A stretch of DNA of 62,730 nt, counting the filler, from Choristocarpus tenellus KU-1152 (taxonomy: Eukaryota; Protista; Phaeophyceae): NCBI GenBank assembly GCA_964200185.2. It is 11 parts of 11 records of this genome, joined end to end, with 100 filler letters (N's around TTAATTAATTAA, not from the genome) between each part and the next. Parts side by side here need not be neighbours in the genome. Positions count along the whole stretch, not along the records: positions 21,726 to 31,407 come from CAXNAD020003475.1; 10 more parts are not named here. The stretch is one strand, 5' to 3'. The notes under the pieces were generated by a model. It was not told the origin of the DNA. It saw nothing but the letters and a program-made list of their open reading frames with translations, and did not search any database. Both the position numbers and the translations under genes were made by a program. Positions 20,200 to 31,407 of this stretch are shown piece by piece (the first letter of the stretch is position 1; each line of letters begins with the position of its first letter).

Positions 20200-22304
20200 G
20201 ACTGCAAGAATTGCACTGCACTCATGCTTGACCCGTCCCAGACATGCTGAGCGCAATGAGTCATACCCCCTTCGATATATTGCTTTTCGTCTCTCTGTTG
20301 GTTGTCTTGAACTCAAATCTATCGTCTTGTTCTTGTTTTGTGTGTGAGTGTGTTCGGTAAGAGTGGATTTGTTCAAGTGTAGAAAAACCAACAGATCCAG
20401 TCGGTAACAAAGGGCGTTGGTTTGTGTTTGTGTGATTGCTGTGATAGTAGTGTTGATTTTTTCTGTGTTGATTAGTATGCGATTAGGGTCCGATGACCTT
20501 GGTCAGTAGCAATATTTTCATATTTTGTATGTGTATGACGACAGCAGTTGGTTGGTTTTGACTGTTTTTCGGTCCGGGTTCCTAGCAACACCCTCGAGTT
20601 CTGAACATTCCCAGACTGAACATCAAGAGAACACGATCGAATATACAGGGCAATACCAACAGGCGCTGGGCTGACTCTATGTCAGTAGATGCTTGGTACG
20701 ATTACTCATCACCCTCTTGGTCAGACTGACTCTTGGTTGCAGAGAGGGGCCATCAAAGCCCATCAGGGAGCTGCTGTGTATATGATGATTTGGTTGACCT
20801 TGTGCGGACATTGTACCCTCTGTGAAGGTGCATGCCGTGCAGTTGGCCCCCAGTTAGTGGGTAGTGGACCCATGCCTGGCCCAATGAAGATACTTGAATA
20901 AGGAGTAATTGAAGAGTAGATCTGATGGTGCTTGCTGGAATTGGGGAAGTGAATTGAATTTTGCTGTCATGCACGTGAATTTAACTTGGCTGATGATGCA
21001 GTAGTGATACAATAAAATCTCTGAAACTCTTAGTAGAGCTTGTTCCTCGTCACCTTCAGAATATTGATGCATTGCTCGTTTGTGTATGTGAGACAGCGGT
21101 GTCACCTCTCTTGATTCAGAAATTGTCTCCTTGCTGTTCTCCACTGGCATGTTGAGTTACTTGCCACCAGCTGTTCATCGAGGTTGATATTGCTACAGCT
21201 GTATACCAGAAGGTGCACTTTTTGGAAGACTAACTCTACTACTACAATGAGAGGTCGACGAAGCCCCCCACCAAGTGGCCAACAACTTGTTTGTTATTCA
21301 TCCTCTGCTGAATTTGCAATTTCTACACCATATAGTGCCAAGGGAAGTAACGCATACCGCACAAACCACAGCCGAAAACAGAAGAAATAAAGGGCGATAA
21401 TGTGTCTAGCTTGTATATTCGGTGTGTTATTTTGTATGTTGTAATGATACATCTTTGAGGGTGTCCCTCCTCCCTTTTCTCGGAAACAAGTTGGGGCTGA
21501 TTCTTCCGTCGAATATTGTAAGAAACAATACAACAGATAATGATGAAGTCGTAATTTTGGCTATCGTGCTTGCCGAGGCGCCCAAAACTCTCCACCGCAA
21601 AGGTGTTGAGGTTATAACTACGAGGNNNNNNNNNNNNNNNNNNNNNNNNNNNNNNNNNNNNNNNNNNNNTTAATTAATTAANNNNNNNNNNNNNNNNNNN
21701 NNNNNNNNNNNNNNNNNNNNNNNNNGCTATTCGCGTGTAACAAACGTTTGCACTTCGTTGAAATATAAGAAGAAATACTCGCTCTATTCGCCTGTAACAC
21801 TACCTGAAAGGATAAAGAAAACAATAGTATGGATAGGGCACTTTCTTTGTGGAGAAAAACTCTCATATCCTTCCCCTCACTACCAGTTAAACTGTTTGTA
21901 CACTAGAGTCATCATAAATATCTTGAGGCTTTCAGTCCAATTCGTAGTACAGTAGAACAATAACGTGCTTGCAAACAATGCGGACTTACTTATTCAGCTC
22001 AGGATACATAGAAGTGGGAAAATTTCAAATTGGTCGAAAGTTTGCAAAAAAATAAATAAGCTGATACATGTAACCCATAACATATTGCAAAAGAACACCT
22101 TCCAGATCAAAAGAAGACATGCCATTATTCAGGTAACCATCCTACCAAAAACACAATAATACCACAAGTCTAAAATAATCCGTGTTGTACTTCACTACGA
22201 TTGAAACTCTTTGTGACGCATTGCCTATGTAATGACTTGATTAATCTTTGGAAAAAATATAAAAAAACTACTACACTGTTTGACATTTTTGTCTTTTTAG
22301 CCAC

Positions 22305-25300
22305 CTGCCTGCTGAAAGAAAAAAACGAATGTGGGCTCGTTGCAATGACGACTTCAGCTCCTTTCATGAAGTGATGCACACTTTCCACCGTCAAGATTGT
22401 TTCAGCAAGCACATGCTGGTAGCCCCGTAGTACAACACAATAATGTTTGTGGTCGAGGTGACTTGTTCGGTATGGATGTATTGGCGCCGGGCCTTCAGGT
22501 GTATCAACATCCACATTGACAGAACCATTATCTTCCACTTCATCCTTTGAATCCCAGGTATCTTCCCCGCTGCAATATTGTGGTAATGGGGGCTCATGTG
22601 TGTCACACATCACTACCCTCCCACCTACTTGGAGTGCAATGGTGTCAGCCTCACGTCCTATCTTTTCGTCATGGAAGCATGAACGACATGAGTCGTATCC
22701 CCTAAAACCACAATTGTAGGCTCCAAAGCGCTGATCATTGCAAGTGCCATCACATATCTGGTACAACCGAAGGGCACATTACTGGAATGGGTCAGGGCGT
22801 TGGCAGTGGAGCATGTGCTGGTGAAGTCTGTGAATATATGTTGGACTGCTTGGTGTAATATCTGTCCGGACAGCAAATATGGAATGGTACATCACTGTGT
22901 CGAAAGGACAACTGCTTCTGACAGAAGCAATGCCTCAACACTTCAAATACAGATCGTTAAGAGGCAGGTGAAGTGAATGGCAATCTATCCACATGTTACT
23001 CCTGCAATTCTACCTCTGGGCACTGTACAAATTTGAACCTGCAAAATACGTATGGATCAGCCATCCCTCTCACTCACCGCAACCCCATCAGAAGTACACC
23101 CCCAATCACATTCCTTTGCAGGTGGTGGTGAGAGCGTGTCACACATGATAACATGTTGTCGTTCATGACAAGTATCATTGGATCCTCTATCCATACCTTG
23201 CATTGAGCGATACCACAGCGCCATTTCCTCTTTCTGTGCTTCCTCGAGATCAGTGAAGCAAAGGCGGCAGTCCTTTCCATATTTGGGTATATCACCAGCC
23301 CCACACATAAAGCCTCCGAAACGGGGTCTCAGCTTGCCTCGACCCCGTGAGCATGAAGGGTCACAAGTAGTACTTGTGCCCTTTGGTAACGATCCGTGAA
23401 CACTGCCACCACAGAACCGTGTACATTCGCTCTCGGAAGCAGGGTCAACAACTGAATGATCCGGCACTCCACTCCATCCTCCGTGTTTCTTCACACCCCC
23501 ACCAGTAGTGCTCCCATGAATAAACAGGGCTTCCCCATTTACCGCTTGCTGTAGAGTTTCATGCGTCACATCGTGGAAGCCAACATTCACGATCTAAACA
23601 GACAGACAGGCGAAAATTAATTATTCCATATGTCATCAGTGTTAAGATGCTGATCATCTGATTTGTCTTGATACTATACAGCATTGTCAGTTCTTACTGA
23701 GCGTTGATCTGTATATTGTACTGGTCGTTATCTCCACTTGCTTCATTAGCTCATCATCGCAACATCATCAACTACCTTTAGAACATCACAGTACATAGGC
23801 AGCACCAGAACAGTCGCTACCTATCACACATACGGCAATACTATGTGCCACATCAGTTCCCTCATATATTGATTCGAGTTTGGTCTTTTTGTTTCTTCGT
23901 TGTTTTTCACTCTCTTCTTCTTCACACAAGAAGTCATCAGCTATATACCATGTGTTGACTATTATTTTTCTCGGCTTACATCATCTCCTCACAAGACATC
24001 AACATCACTCTGCACTAAGTGTACCTGATATACACCGCGAGGCAATATATACAGAGTCGAAACATCCTCAGAAACCCTTCTCAGCCAAGGTAGCAAGCCG
24101 CTTCAGAGAACATATATTTTTCAGTTGAGCATCTCAATGAATACCCACATTTCACATCAACCATCCCCTGATTGAGCAAAACATGTCCTCAGATTTACCG
24201 GAACAAATACACCAGTGCTTTATTTCACTATGATACCTCTTTGTTACAAACTAGTCACATCACAAGAAAGCACGATCCATTCGAATTCAGGTTTCAATAG
24301 GTTATGAGCCTTACACGATTCCCTTTCGCTCAATGCTGTGGAAGTATGAGTTTGCTTATTCTCTAAGACAATAATTTTCAAATTGAGAAACAAGACAGAA
24401 TGTATACAAAATGGTTTGGAGCGCTCCTAAGAGAAGTCCAATATATTAGGATTGTCTCAATATTGAACATGCACGAAATGGCACAGGAATGGACCTCGTG
24501 CCTCACACACGCCCGTAACTTTCAAGAACCCGTGCAAGACCCAGACAATTTACAGAAATATATTAATCCATCTCACCAAGCTAGATTCCACAAATTTCCT
24601 GGAGTAGCGTTGCCACAAAAGCCAGCTGTACGGAAAGTCTGATAAGGTTGCCCATATTGCCACGTCAAAGGGGTAGCTGTAGCCCCATTGATCTCTCGTG
24701 TAGTTTAGGAACTCTGTGAACTCCTTATCATTGTTGTTGTAGATCGCATTTCCATTCAGGTGGCCGAGTACATGCCAGGATTCAGCCACAGTTGCCGTGG
24801 TGTGGAAGTTGTCCCCGGCAAGCGTGCTGCCCTTCACCCAAAATGCCTCGCCAAAACCAAATGCTGCCAAGTACAGTTCATCGAACGACGTTTCGTGCGC
24901 GACAATGACATCCCACTCAATCCATGCCAGCATATCATAAGAAGATATTTTCGTCTTGATCTCATTATCTAAAAACAGTTTGTAAAACTGTGCAGTAGGA
25001 CCTATCGGGTACACCAGCTCCTGTCATAGGCAAGTAGAAGATGAGAGCACGGGCGTTTGAGGGCATTATTCAATGCACTGATAATACTATGAGTCAACAA
25101 GTTGACAGAATGTTTTATTTGAGAAAAGAATCAGGCACGGAGCAACAACATGACTTTGAGGGACAAGGGGCTATAAGTGTTTGCCTTCTGAAAAACTTGA
25201 ATCTCACACCTCCTCTGAGAGACCTGCATACATAATCTTTCTAGATTTGAAGCAAGGAAAAGTTAATTTGTCGAACTCATGCAACACGCCATCTGGTATG

Positions 25301-25602
25301 GTGTCCTCAGCCCCGGCGTAGTACAATATGAGGTCCATGTACGTCGTCCTTGAAGACGAGCACTTTGAATGCCACAGCTCAAGAGATTGGACAACACTAT
25401 CGACGTCGCCTTCATATGTTGGGACCACCACCGCCATCCTCCCCCTGCTACCGAAGATTGACGGCAAACTCGTATCCTCCGCGGGTCCAAATCCAACAAA
25501 ACCAAAGTATAGGATTGTAGCGATGACGCACAAAACGTATATGACGGGATGAAGGTGATTCCTAAAATGATGTAGTCCCGACTGTGTGTGCCTGCCCCTC
25601 AT
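22305..25602 (-). CDS. Type II membrane protein: GT-A-like domain, two Cys-rich modules, start of a second GT-like domain. Exons 25602-25210, 25020-24577, 23593-23078, 22757-22305; 3' end unresolved
   Basis: N-terminal TM segment (VIYVLCVIATILYFGFVGF), MAVVVPTY first strand, IEWD DxD-like motif and HLNGNAIY motif. Phase-0 GT-AG junctions. Second domain begins HYCVVLRGY...VESVHHFMKGAEVVIAT. The start could be an upstream ATG near 25692. Confidence 0.82.
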
Positions 25603-26238
25603 GTAAGTCTTTGGAGGTCTTGCCTTTGGAACGTTCTTCTCGAAATACGACAAGAGTGGGGCAACAGTCAAGTTGGACACCGATCGATGCATGTTGTCCC
25701 AACACCCAGTGATGCGGTATTGTGGGCACTTCAAATAACGAGGTACGTGGATAATGATGCAAAATTTGTAGAAGACGCTGAATTAATTGTTAAGTATGAA
25801 GGATTGCATTACAGGAATGGTAAAGAAGAAGAGAATAATGTTCATTTTTTAATGGATCAGGGTTTTTCACATTTATGATATTTTATTTCCTTAGGGCTTA
25901 TACTCACAATATGTATTTTTATTATTATGCCTTCTGACATTTTGCAGATGTGTCAGGGGGAAACCAATGAAAACTATATACATATTTATTATTTTCATAT
26001 TTACCAAGTTTAGCATCTATTGATATATTATTTCGAAAAATCATTACTAGAAAATTTCCATGTTTGGAAGATATATATATTTATATAGGAATTTTCACAT
26101 TCGACAAGTAACCTAAATATTGGCGCTTCTTAGACTATTCAAAGATTGGTAGAAGGACTTTTTCCTAGCTGCAATGTTTTCAAAAGAACAATTAGAATAG
26201 AACAGAAATATGCTGTTCGTTGTTTTGGAAACTAGACT

Positions 26239-26798
26239 AGACAAAAGAGCGGAAGGAAGCCGGGAGGGCAGCCTGGACATTAATATAATGGTTATCAATT
26301 TAAAGTTCCTGATAAAATAGTAAATTTAGTTCCTAAAGAAAAAACGTGCGATTGTGGAGGCGAGCTTCATTTAGACAAAAACTACAAGTCGCATCAAAAG
26401 ATAGAGATTCCGCCGAGTAAGCCATTTGTAACTGAATATAGACTGCATTGCAGCCATTGCTCTTCATGCTTCAGAGAGTACAGGACTTCGCTTAAAAATT
26501 ATAAACTGTTAGAGAAAAATGCTGAAAGCATAATAACAAGTCTTGGAGGATTTTTTAATAATAGTAAAAGGGATATACAATCAATTCTAAGTCAAATATT
26601 TAACCTAGATATCTCGCTTGGTTTAATATCGAGCAGCGAAGCAAGAGTAACAGAAAAGCTAGAAAATAAGTATAAAAGCTTGTGGAATTAGCCAAAAATA
26701 GTCAGTATTTACATTTAGATGAAAGCTCTGCTAATAACAAGGGTAAATTAGGGTGGTGCTGGGTAGCAGCATGTAGGGCAGTGACGGTATTTAACTAA
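26239..26798 (+). pseudogene. tnpC: Bacterial IS66-family transposase (TnpC) fragment, Rickettsiales/Wolbachia-like
   Basis: RQKSGRKPGGQPGH*, zinc finger KTCDCGGEL...HQKIEIP...VTEYRLHCSHCSSC, HTH region SQIFNLDISLGLISSSEARV, then after a frameshift near 26675 YLHLDESS...GWCWVA (IS66 DET-like and WxWV motifs). One in-frame stop at 26281. No introns, AT-rich. Confidence 0.88.
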
Positions 26799-27214
26799 TA
26801 TATTTTCAGTATTGAATTTTGTCTTTTCATCGGATTTTCCCCTACCACACCTGTAAAATGTGAAGAGGGTACAATGATAGAAACAAGATGTAAGTAGTTT
26901 GACTTTCGCATTTTAGAAGGAATGATGCAATGGGCAATGAGTGCTGATTACGGTAAAAAGAAAAACAACGAGATGGACGAAGAGTTCAGAACGGGGTGGC
27001 TAGGAGAGTATAGAAGAGGTAGGAGAGAAGTTGAAAGAAATTGGTGGTAGGTAGAAGCATGAGGTAGGAAGGGATGGATCAGAACATAGCAAAAACTTGA
27101 GGTTAGTAGTGGGACAGGACTGTTAAAACATAGCCTACTCATTTGATTTGTCTTAACACGATACAAACAATATTCATGAGCTTAAAGAGTTCATTGGGAG
27201 ACTATACGTTATTT

Positions 27215-27600
27215 GTTTTTCGTCAAACACGCACCCAATGCACATATTTTCTAAACTGTCGATCGACAGCCAAAAAATAACAATTCAACAGACCAGACGT
27301 TACATGTTTTTCGTCAAACACGCGCACAATACATATTTTTTCTAAACTCTCCATCGACGCTCTAAAAATAACAATTCAACAGACCAGATGTCAATTTTTT
27401 AATCGCCAAAAACAAACCCAATACACACATCCTTTCCTCCAAGTCCATTGACGAAATAAAAATCTAGAAGCACTTTTACCCTTCGTTGATTTTGGAAAGA
27501 AAAAGAGCAATTCGGCAGACCAGACGTTATTTTCTTGTGATCAAAAACAACCCCTATACACATAACCTTTTCTCCAGACGATTGAACTAGAGGAAATTGT
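27215..27600. repeat. Degenerate ~92-bp tandem repeat (2 clear and 1-2 diverged units)
   Basis: Recurring TTTTTCGTCAAACACGC...AAAAATAACAATTCAACAGACCAGACGTT. Confidence 0.75.
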
Positions 27601-28546
27601 AGCACGTCTATACACACTTCTACCTCAAACATGTTTTTGTGGATAGAGAGCCTACTCTGTGCGTTCGTCAATGACACCTGATTTACTTTTTATGATTCCC
27701 GTGCATTGAACGAAATAATAAAACACATGTTGCTCATCTCTTCTAAATTACATATTTCATGCGGCATCTCGCCCAGACAGCTTACTTCTCTCCACTCCCC
27801 TATCCCCCTTTTCAGGAAGTGGGAGGTTGGGAGACCAACCAATAGCAGCACTCTCCGGTCGTGGAAGAAGTCCAAGACAGATAAAATCGTTCACCTATTC
27901 TGCTACATGCTTGTCGACCAATGTGGGCAGAACGAGGGAGAAGGAGACAGGTACACTTGGAAGGACCTCGCCGCTTGGTTTTTGGATGAGGATAAGAAGT
28001 TTGTGCCATTGGCAAGGGCGCTGCAAGAGTTGATGTCCGAGGAGATACGTACATCTGTAACCAACATGCAGGTCAGGACCTTCCTCGAATCGTTGAAGAA
28101 GGATCTCAACACATAACACACTCGCCAGGTCCACAACTCAATCCTTGCGGCCATCGCTCCTGGTGTTAAAGTGCTCAACGACGGGGTGACATCCACACCC
28201 TCAGTTCCTCAGCAGTTAAGAGCACAGAATTCATCCACAATAGGGAACGCTTCAGTGCTATGTCTGTAGATAGTACTGGAGAGTCGTGTCTCACTTTCGA
28301 CACACAAGACCTACAGAACTCTGCACCACCTCTCCACCAGGCAAGTAAGGGTGTCCACCCCAATGGAATATGTTTTTTCAGCCAAGATTCGAACTCAGAA
28401 ATATCAACCCCGTGAAACAATATCTTCCACCAGGGTTCGAACACGGAATGCCGTATCCTATACACTCCTAAGAAATTTTCAACATATCACCCCAAAAAAA
28501 CATCCACCCCTTCGTCCAACATTCTCTCGTTCTTCGCGGTCGTGAT

Positions 28547-29499
28547 TGTTAGGTTGAAGAAGGACAGGGTAAGGATATTCGACGCGACAAGAGACATTTC
28601 CTAGCGACGGTTCGATGTGCAGCACCCTGAAACACACGTCCTTGGCCTAACCGTGTGGGAGAGCAACAGCATGGCCATGCCCCACGACCCGATCACTTCT
28701 CACGATTCCGCTGAGGGAATGCACTCCTTGGACCCTAACACCAATAAAAGGGTGTGCCACCCAGATGCACTGTATCAGCAACACACTCAGAGGTACTGTA
28801 TTCCAACCACCATAAAGTGAAAGCGCTTATATTCTTCCTGCCCACAATCTGCTCCTTCAACACGACAAATTATGTACACTCTCTCCTCGAAATCCAAGAA
28901 CAAACATATACACGACATAAATATTTTGTGCCCTGTATACCTTTAAACAGGGTACAGATTGGAACTGACGACGATACATACGCAAACTTCAAAGAAAGGT
29001 TGAGATAGAGGCAACAGATGGACAAATACCGTGCCTGTCTACGTCTGTGAAGTGGAGACCCTTCTACATCACCAAGGCAACTCAAAAGTGTGTAGAGAAA
29101 CAAAACCGTTTCACATTAATATTCGAACAGGCGTACAACATAGGACCGCGCCAACGCTCAACACTTTCCATGTAGTACCACCAACTCAACTGCGATACAC
29201 ATATCGATCTTTACCCCTTGCCGAGTCATAAAAAAACAATCGGGTGTTGAGAAACTTGGCGCATGTAAGGCTCGTCGCCGGAAGCTAGCAGTTGAATTAC
29301 ATGGTAAAGCATACACTGAATTATTAATTGCCCGTCGACCATCCATCATCACTGACGTGAGAATGCATGTTGACTTATTATATTCTTATGCACGTTCGTA
29401 CTTTGTATCGTACATAACTAATTTTAAAGGCACGTATAACCTATGTTATATACTTGTGTCAGCACAAGTAACGTAAGGATAACACTAGGCTATTCGACA
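28547..29499 (-). repeat. Probable 3' LTR of the copia element
   Basis: Polypurine tract AAGGGGAGGA (29500-29509, minus strand) is directly followed by TGTCG. The distal end (TAACA at 28547) is tentative. Confidence 0.5.
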
Positions 29500-31337
29500 T
29501 CCTCCCCTTGCTGAAAACAAGTATGAACTCTCAAACAATCACAACATCAACAAAAAATAAAAAAATAAAAACACACATGTTTTCTCGCATGTTCATCAAA
29601 AACTTCACGTGTTGTCTAAAACCTCGAACTGGCAAATTTTTGGTCGATACATCTGCCCTCTGGTTTGCAGTACCAACAAAAACAACACGAATCTCTCCTT
29701 TTCTAGACAAATCCCTCAAACAATGATGTCGGACATCAATGTGCTTTGTTCTAGTAGAGTGTGGCATTTCGTACTAGTTTGCATGCACCATCGTTGTCCT
29801 CAAACAAGTCAATGCAACGCCTAGGGAACTGCGGCTGAATATACTCAAAAACCTTTCTCAAGAAAAGTAATTCCTATGCCACTCTGCTAAGAGCTATGTA
29901 TTCACTCTCCGTTGAAGACAGAGCTACAACTCTTTGTACCTTTGACATCCAAGATATTGCTCCTCCTGCAAACATAATTACTCCTCCAGTCACAGATCTA
30001 CGATCATTCCAGTCTCCAGCATAACTAGCATCAGCATACGCACTCAACTCACACTCCGTATCAAAACCACCAAAGCTCAATCCAACACTGGGACAAGTAT
30101 TCAAATATGCTAAAATACATTTCACTGCACGCCAATGTGTAACTTTGGGATTGCTACTGTACTTGGCAACTTCACGAACTGCATTTGCAATGTCAAGCCA
30201 AGTCATAACAAATGCCCACATCAAACTACCAACTGCCTCTCTGTACGGTGTATTTTCATCAACATTTGGATGATTCTCACTCTTGTCTAGAGTCCTTGAG
30301 AGGTCATGGGGTACCGACCTCTTCTTTGCCCCATCCATACCAAATCTTTGACACCCTTAATGTACCTAGTCTGACTGATGGTGACAGTCTGTGCAGTTCT
30401 GCCACGTGAAATCTCACAACCCATATAATACTCAAGATCATCAAGATCTTCTATGGAAAACTGCTCTTTGATCCTAGAGCGAACTCAAATAAAAATATCT
30501 ACTTTACCAGCTACCAAAAGATCATCTACGTGGGGGGCTATCACAGCACAAACAACGCCATCTCTTACATAGCGTAATACACAGGGATCTGCTCTGCATT
30601 GCTCAAAACCACACTGTTCCAAAACGTGTACCAACAGATTATTAAACTCCCTGCTAGCCTGTTTGGTTCCATAAAGTGCCTTGATTAAACGCACAATCTT
30701 TCCAGACCATATACCACATCCATCACATAAACGAACAAAGATCTCTTTACGAATATCTGCTTGTATGAATGCTTACTTCACATCCCAATGCTTTAATTCC
30801 CAATCTTTGTCTACAGCTAATGCTAATACCATTTTCGAAGACGCAGGGGACAGTGTTGGTGCAAAGGTATCTTGGTAATCTAAACCCTCAATCTGTCGAA
30901 AACATTCTGTTACGAAACATGCCTTTTATCTAACTACCTCATCAAATTTATTAATCTTACGCTCGTGAATCCTTTTAGTGTCCATTGCCCTGCGTCCAGG
31001 GGGTAACACGACCTCCACCCAAACATTATTCAACAACAAACCAGACATCTCTTCTGCTCTAGCTCCATCCCATAGATCATATTCGGGAGATCTACGTGCT
31101 GCTCTTACAGTCTTGGGTTCTGGAGGGAGCTCATCCGCTAACACTCAAATAGAATCATCACTCGCAAACATCACAAGAGTAGTCTATATGGAAAACAGAC
31201 GCAAAATATCAAACAATGGAACTCTTACAAAATAAAACAGCAGAAAAATCAAAGAAGCTTGCACAATGGTGACCTCAGCATCCGGTCTCCACTTCCTCAA
31301 CTCTCACCACAAATCTAGACCTTTATCCATAACAATA
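29500..31337 (-). mobile_element. Decayed Ty1/copia pol (RT and RNase H)
   Basis: EPKTVRAA...EEMSGL..NNVW, ALYGTKQASREF, HVDDLLV, PYREAVGSL, YADASYAGDWNDRRSVTG, VALSSTESEY and RTKHIDVRHH appear in canonical order, with several frameshifts. Confidence 0.95.
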
Positions 31338-31407
31338 GAGCCAAAGTATCTTAGAGGGTACAGCCGCGTCCATTTGGGGGCCAAAGTCCAATGTTGCAAT
31401 TTTGATG
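31338..31407. mobile_element. MITE end abutting the copia element at a contig break
   Basis: GAGCCAAAGTATCTTAGAGGGTACAGCCGCGTCC matches the family TIR. Confidence 0.8.

Follow-up and report, generated by a model that had tools for sequence, protein, structure and literature searches.

An IS66 transposase fragment of probable Rickettsiaceae origin in the intergenic DNA of a brown-algal contig

The window analysed here is the whole stretch of 62,730 nucleotides joined from 11 parts of assembly GCA_964200185.2, filed as Choristocarpus tenellus KU-1152, and the locus of interest lies in the 9.7-kb piece at positions 21726-31407 (CAXNAD020003475.1). Between a brown-algal gene on the minus strand and a conserved block of host DNA, positions 26182-26801 of the plus strand hold an internal piece (~0.62 kb, i.e. 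~620 bp) of an IS66-family transposase gene, spanning residues ~58-252 of ~455 and including the zf-IS66 zinc finger. This is a broken IS66 TnpC-type transposase fragment and is neither an insertion sequence (IS) nor a gene. It begins with a weakly conserved 5′ edge (26182-26235), equivalent to about residues 58-75 of a 455-amino-acid (aa) relative (tblastn with P0001 starts at residue 58, position 26182), which ends in a TAG stop at 26233-26235. A basic stretch follows (26236-26283) in which GGQPGH is encoded at 26263-26280, in the plus-strand frame running from 26236, and which closes with a TAA stop at 26281-26283; here the relatives read GGQ.GH[KR]Y. Positions 26284-26676 form a stop-free run of 131 codons comprising the zinc finger (CxC...CxxC) and a helix-rich DNA-binding region after it. 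The cysteine codons of the finger start at 26347, 26353, 26458 and 26467, and their columns are invariant or near-invariant across the aligned relatives. At 26677-26678 a 1-nt deletion within a glutamate codon shifts the frame, as placed by the codon register of nine relatives that align with the fragment codon for codon and free of gaps. Past the frameshift, the first ~40 codons of the DDE_Tnp_IS66 domain can still be read (26679-26801), with the motifs LHLDES and WCWVAA.

The family assignment is borne out by profile and protein searches. Pfam zf-IS66 (PF13005) scores 31.4 bits on the 131-codon run against a gathering score of 27.3, and the NCBIfam IS66 model NF033517 matches at positions 17-143 and then 147-185, colinear over the frameshift (E = 2.5e-10 and 9e-5). 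These matches cover positions 17-185 of 387 and score 40 and 21.7 bits against a cutoff of 180, which marks a fragment and not a full member of the family. Against 1.84 billion representative proteins, phmmer returned 433 matches, the best (E = 2.9e-46) being a 455-aa protein with 64% identity, and the 131-codon run is 64-77% identical to relatives from metagenomes and genomes. The TnpC motifs named in an earlier note on this DNA (GGQPGH, CxC/CxxC and LHLDE/WxWV) are all present. We also agree with its explanation of why the fragment is missing from the open reading frame (ORF) track: for want of a start codon, no plus-strand ORF of at least 50 aa is listed at the fragment.

Transposase residues ~58-254 of ~455 alone are present in the 9.7-kb piece, as found by tblastn and by a six-frame hmmsearch whose profile was built from 16 full-length relatives. 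In the latter search the segment past the frameshift covers profile positions 207-254, and nothing in the piece matches beyond position 254 of 461. The catalytic domain DDE_Tnp_IS66 (PF03050) is represented by its first ~40 residues only, with ~200 of its residues absent from the fragment. DNA alignments to the relatives are solid only from ~26236-26248, which places the left breakpoint somewhere in 26180-26236. At the other end blastn homology stops at 26799 in 6 of 7 relatives (26770 in L013), protein-level homology stops at 26792-26795, and an alignment of four relatives (A5) extends the homology to ~26801; the right breakpoint is therefore at 26799-26801. The TAA site at 26281-26283 is lysine or arginine in all relatives. 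The earlier note had counted one stop and one frameshift; the broken frame was rightly seen, but the tally is two in-frame stops and two 1-nt deletions since homology starts at 26182, the second deletion lying at ~26794 and producing a TAA at 26796. A search near the fragment for the 15-bp terminal inverted repeat of the rickettsial copies found no match at up to 3 mismatches, and neither flanking inverted repeats nor a target duplication were found. A weak look-alike of the rickettsial repeat at ~25948-25968 (MAFFT; ~10/19 bases, counted by eye) was judged to be chance, the formal search being negative. Rfam and tRNA scans of the 9.7-kb piece were empty. As read from the sequence, the fragment is unable to encode a transposase, because it has no start codon, two stops, two frameshifts and ~200 missing residues of the DDE domain, and it would not be mobilisable because the terminal inverted repeats are absent.

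Relatives were sought in one genome each of 185,579 prokaryotic species with two subfamily-specific peptide patterns taken from a 6-sequence alignment. They were confirmed in two genomes only, both Rickettsiales: a lake metagenome-assembled genome (MAG) filed under Rickettsia (66% identity) and the Rickettsia endosymbiont of the weevil Polydrusus tereticollis (58-59%, at three loci and so in at least 3 copies). A genome scan that used just the fragment as query returned no relative. Copies in JGI metagenomes are 77%, 74%, 70% and 68% identical over a 135-aa query, or 74%, 73%, 70% and 69% over ~194 shared columns. Over these ~194 residues the nearest relatives range from 58 to 74% aa identity, and the best at the DNA level is 75% identical over 26248-26799. 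One of the metagenome copies, L012 (69%), is an intact 465-aa gene adjoining a PNPase gene, whose named homologues are Rickettsiaceae MAGs (70-76%) and Trichorickettsia, Tisiphia and Rickettsia (62-65%); apart from one MAG labelled Janthinobacterium lividum, all are Rickettsiaceae or Rickettsiales. A Tisiphia endosymbiont encodes a protein that matches the fragment at 64% identity. IMG/VR yielded no relative, no match above 41% identity was found among 72,556 plasmids, and no algal protein occurs among the fragment's matches. Ten relatives had contigs that were examined by neighbouring genes or record title, and all have bacterial surroundings, with housekeeping genes or with IS1, IS3 and IS630; for the other metagenome contigs with relatives, low G+C was the sole feature assessed.

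In a tree inferred by maximum likelihood (LG+C20; 48 rows, 200 columns), the fragment joins the Rickettsiales MAG and L012 in a clade of 7 rows (95/87). This clade is nested in a 15-row clade (99/91) that includes the Polydrusus Rickettsia, outside which fall a Cardinium plasmid copy (40%), Nostoc and Photobacterium. Moreover, the fragment and P0001-P0006 have lost an LPxGV segment that would lie after the zinc finger and before the helix-turn-helix region, leaving a 3-column gap that is filled in more distant relatives. The guanine-cytosine (GC) content of the fragment is 36%, against 31-40% in the relatives. These comparisons support Rickettsiales, family Rickettsiaceae, as the home of the closest named relatives, and the Rickettsiales-like character proposed in the earlier note holds in the TnpC phylogeny. 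The single-ORF IS66 elements of Rickettsiaceae are presumably the ISBst12-like subgroup of ISfinder, which lacks tnpA and tnpB. The element of the Polydrusus Rickettsia is 1453 bp long, contains one ORF of 447 aa and ends in perfect inverted repeats of 15 bp; two of its copies (L006 and L007) are 100% identical, suggesting recent activity in that symbiont, and the third (L005) is truncated. Several other copies sit in IS-dense, decaying surroundings: L004 is frameshifted, L008 lies between IS1 and IS630 fragments, and in L025 the IS66 gene is interrupted by an IS3. Such contexts are typical of symbiont genomes with IS proliferation.

The fragment is flanked on both sides by DNA that is colinear with a single Choristocarpus contig, L023. 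To its left, coding exon 1 of the adjacent brown-algal gene (25204-25598, minus strand, from the ORF list) is colinear with L023 1260-1694 by tblastx and blastn; the gene start is divergent to the fragment and ~580 bp from it. The next exon (24550-25014) has its best matches in brown algae (Choristocarpus tenellus at 74%, then Hapterophycus and Ectocarpus), and the gene from 22308 to 25449 is colinear with L023 at 69-80% nucleotide identity. To the right, a conserved block at 26918-27120, with no strand assigned, is 77% identical to L023 525-723 (blastn, E = 4e-37), and its order and orientation relative to the gene are the same in both contigs. No IS66 similarity was found in L023, where the interval from gene to block measures ~680 nt, ~790 bp shorter than the 1469 nt found here. 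A copia-type reverse transcriptase (RT) lies further along at 30485-30694. The earlier note's placement of the fragment in an algal nuclear contig agrees with the brown-algal matches, the nearby copia RT and the colinearity of both flanks. A chimeric contig is unlikely, because the fragment stands between host blocks that adjoin in the related contig and two exact false joints would be needed. The arrangement argues for a real nuclear insertion that would postdate divergence from the Choristocarpus lineage.

Other features of the host DNA deserve brief description. The gene at 22170-25734 (minus strand) comprises at least 4 exon-like ORFs kept across brown algae; no Pfam domain is found in it, and it is likely to carry an N-terminal membrane anchor. 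Its neighbours in a language-model atlas include clusters labelled viral and a cluster with DUF3405. The gene may belong to a glycosyltransferase-like family that algal viruses share. An exact look-up of the host exon ORF gave no independent assembly record. The block at 26918-27120 is ~200 nt long, purine-rich and upstream of the gene in both contigs. It is probably non-coding, because it shows 2-nt and 3-nt indels against L023 (alignment A4), and it could be a promoter, a 5′ untranslated exon or another conserved regulatory element. The conservation of non-coding DNA with Choristocarpus suggests a host fairly closely allied to it, in or near Discosporangiales. Just past it lies a 91-nt tandem repeat (27199-27388, 2.1 copies, 86% match), with a degenerate third copy ~200 nt further at 27500-27563. 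Positions 27121-30876 (~3.75 kb), which hold the tandem repeat, unassigned ORFs and the C-terminal part of the copia RNase H/RT, correspond to only ~190 nt in L023 (338-525), and the N-terminal part of the copia RT at 30877-31136 matches L023 74-338 in colinear order. This layout suggests either an old shared copia element that has undergone a deletion in Choristocarpus or independent insertions.

The extent of the foreign DNA was overestimated at first. A bacterial island spanning 25745-26800 had been proposed, of 1055 bp; the claim stands for 26182-26801 and not for 25745-26181, which matches neither the 5′ portion of any relative nor the fetched bacterial loci or plasmids. By tblastx, 25600-26190 and 26796-27700 gave no match to any of the fetched bacterial loci. 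A 46-codon, stop-free, AT-rich frame on the plus strand at 25738-25875 appears coding-like on inspection; neither Pfam nor the fetched loci gave a match to it, nor did the plasmids by tblastn. The abrupt switch to AT-rich DNA that had drawn attention to the region is real as a fall in GC, to 27-38% within 25745-26181 and 28.8% overall, below every other part of the piece. As a sign of foreign origin, composition was rejected: other stretches of the piece are just as AT-rich (21876-22325, 27126-27575 and 29376-29675, at 33-36% GC) and the IS66-free orthologous interval in L023 has 37.6% GC, so that this is ordinary composition for host intergenic DNA and no evidence of a foreign source.

The fragment has evolved differently from its sisters. 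At sites where five clade members agree, to which the count was limited, the fragment carries 18, 10 and 14 unique changes at codon positions 1, 2 and 3 (28 non-synonymous, 14 synonymous). The corresponding figures are 4, 3 and 10 for L008 (6 non-synonymous, 11 synonymous) and 5, 5 and 11 for L009 (9 non-synonymous, 12 synonymous). The ratio of non-synonymous to synonymous changes, 28:14, differs from that of the two sisters combined (15:23; Fisher p = 0.024), and ~10% of invariant sites at codon positions 1 and 2 have changed in the fragment against ~3% in the sisters. This excess of roughly 6-7% can be put down to evolution without constraint, and the terminal branch of the fragment in the tree (0.24 vs 0.08-0.10 for the sisters) agrees with relaxed constraint. 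The conserved blocks shared with L023 differ by 20-30%. The mutation spectrum was tried as a clue to the place of decay and proved uninformative (equilibrium GC 0.42 in the fragment, 0.39-0.49 in its bacterial sisters). A "fairly recent" transfer, as first suggested, is not demonstrated by a best relative at 74% aa and 75% nucleotide identity together with ~6-7% divergence since constraint ended.

Several explanations other than the integration and decay of Rickettsiaceae DNA can be set against these data. That the assembler or a chimeric read stitched 0.6 kb of bacterial DNA into the contig, which would then be no part of the chromosome, gains some credit from the bacteria that brown-alga cultures carry and from the bacterial reads that a large brown-alga genome project had to filter. 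We nevertheless regard such an artefact as very unlikely: the algal flanks on both sides are colinear with one Choristocarpus contig, both joints would have to fall precisely within 1.3 kb, no other bacterial sequence occurs in the piece, and the fragment is itself cut at both ends and carries stops, frameshifts and substitutions of relaxed constraint. It is improbable, too, that the island is larger than what can be recognised, with 25745-26181 and perhaps 26802-26917 also bacterial and decayed past recognition. The excess of ~790 bp over Choristocarpus, set against ~620 bp of recognisable transposase, would fit such an island, as would the lowest GC in the piece and a distance from 25950 to GGQPGH that resembles the distance from the left inverted repeat to GGQ.GH in the rickettsial copies. 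Against it, a length difference of 170 bp is trivial in unalignable intergenic DNA, the similarity and inverted-repeat searches were all negative, and complete erasure would be odd next to a stretch that is merely ~6-7% decayed.

The donor and the nature of the element offer two further choices. A real insertion might have come from something other than a Rickettsiales symbiont of the alga, such as a free-living, epiphytic or ingested bacterium, or a plasmid or virus carrying this IS66 subfamily. Insertion sequences are horizontally mobile, several clade members come from metagenomes, and a Cardinium plasmid sits on a more distant branch; yet those members of the 15-row clade that carry a name or can be placed by the gene next to them (three loci), together with the Tisiphia protein, are all Rickettsiaceae or Rickettsiales, and the viral and plasmid collections gave nothing closer than stated above. 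We hold this origin to be unlikely. Hardly credible is an IS66-derived transposon family resident and mobile in the genomes of algae or their viruses, a notion for which the precedent is IS607, an element of prokaryotic type that occurs in algal viruses and also in eukaryotes, a brown alga among them (PMC3673617). When eukaryotes were systematically screened for IS families of prokaryotes, IS607 alone was recovered (PMC3673617), and the fragment at hand lacks both its ends and its catalytic domain. The earlier note had allowed for best matches to a eukaryotic or viral element family; no viral or eukaryotic relatives were found, and the ten relatives examined all have bacterial surroundings.

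Other points weigh against an origin from a Rickettsiaceae symbiont of the alga and against insertion after the split. Any relative without its two peptide patterns would escape the genome scan. L008 and L009, which come closest to the fragment (73-74%), are metagenome contigs that hold IS sequences only and provide no taxonomic anchor. IS elements move between bacteria, so the donor taxon is not proven and a lone IS fragment is a weak taxonomic marker. The interval between gene and block cannot be aligned to L023, which makes the breakpoints unmappable and the empty site approximate; it is colinearity by itself that argues for integration, and a deletion in Choristocarpus in place of an insertion here is formally conceivable. 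Lastly, decay could have begun in the donor, some breaks predating the transfer, because rickettsial genomes carry many dead IS copies and L004 is itself frameshifted.

Taken together, we consider it likely that the fragment is a non-functional relic of a single-ORF, Rickettsiaceae-type IS66, joined into host intergenic DNA after the split from Choristocarpus and drifting since then as a pseudogene. DNA would have been released from an intracellular bacterium of the Rickettsiaceae (alphaproteobacteria), presumably an associate of the alga; the lifestyle of the relatives hints at an endosymbiont. A piece of this DNA, cut within the transposase gene at both ends, may then have been captured during repair of a chromosome break upstream of the conserved brown-algal gene. 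The joining was most likely by end-joining repair and not by transposition, and would have taken place after the host lineage parted from Choristocarpus, with the fragment drifting as a pseudogene afterwards. Whether the relic is the visible tip of a wider and datable endosymbiosis, between Megaira-like or Tisiphia-like Rickettsiaceae and early-diverging (Discosporangiales-like) brown algae, with further inserts or a living symbiont to be found, is a tentative idea that we think possible and on balance doubtful.

By itself, a dead IS fragment of 0.6 kb has no functional consequence and is a harmless relic. Nuclear relics of intracellular bacteria are a record of past symbioses that can no longer be observed, and a growing number of algae and protists prove to harbour Rickettsiaceae. 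The main value of the fragment is as a lead to a present or former symbiosis with Rickettsiales in a brown alga that branches early. If reads confirm the insert, there would be grounds to look for more inserts, and for living Rickettsiaceae, both in this alga and in related ones. Were the wider endosymbiosis real, this would be the first nuclear evidence of a rickettsial symbiosis in brown algae and a means to time it. In the literature searched, no rickettsial insert is reported from the nucleus of a brown alga, and a large brown-alga genome study does not mention Rickettsiales.

Compared with the IS66 elements of Rickettsiaceae, such as those of the Polydrusus Rickettsia (L005-L007), the fragment belongs to the same family and subclade, aligns in register, keeps the zinc-finger cysteines, shares the loss of LPxGV and has a similar GC. 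It differs in lacking a start, the DDE core, the 15-bp terminal inverted repeats and a target duplication, in its two stops and two frameshifts, and in lying in eukaryotic DNA. Nuclear transfers from Wolbachia to arthropods and nematodes carry bacterial IS copies, according to the account of Dunning Hotopp 2011 cited by Gilbert and Cordaux (PMC3673617). There, as proposed here, an IS is present in a eukaryote through bulk integration of bacterial DNA and not through its own transposition; the donor order is the same, whereas the donor family and host kingdom are different and no larger transferred block can be recognised around the present fragment. A "Candidatus Megaira"-like genome, MegNdeciBESST (GC ~32%), was recovered from the sequencing project of the brown alga Nemacystus decipiens (PMC10132079). 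It is a living bacterial genome and not a nuclear insert, and it documents an association of Rickettsiaceae with brown algae, at a GC akin to that of the fragment and its relatives. The nucleus of Volvox carteri holds a ~9-kb rickettsial insert with pieces of 16S ribosomal RNA, murB, ddlB and ftsQ-like genes (PMC4324946). In that green alga the housekeeping genes make the donor much firmer, and the insert was confirmed by polymerase chain reaction across strains, whereas here a 0.6-kb IS fragment is known by sequence alone. In both cases Rickettsiaceae-type DNA lies fragmented, decayed and flanked by host sequence in an algal nucleus, and the Volvox insert has likewise been interpreted as a vestige of an earlier intracellular association.

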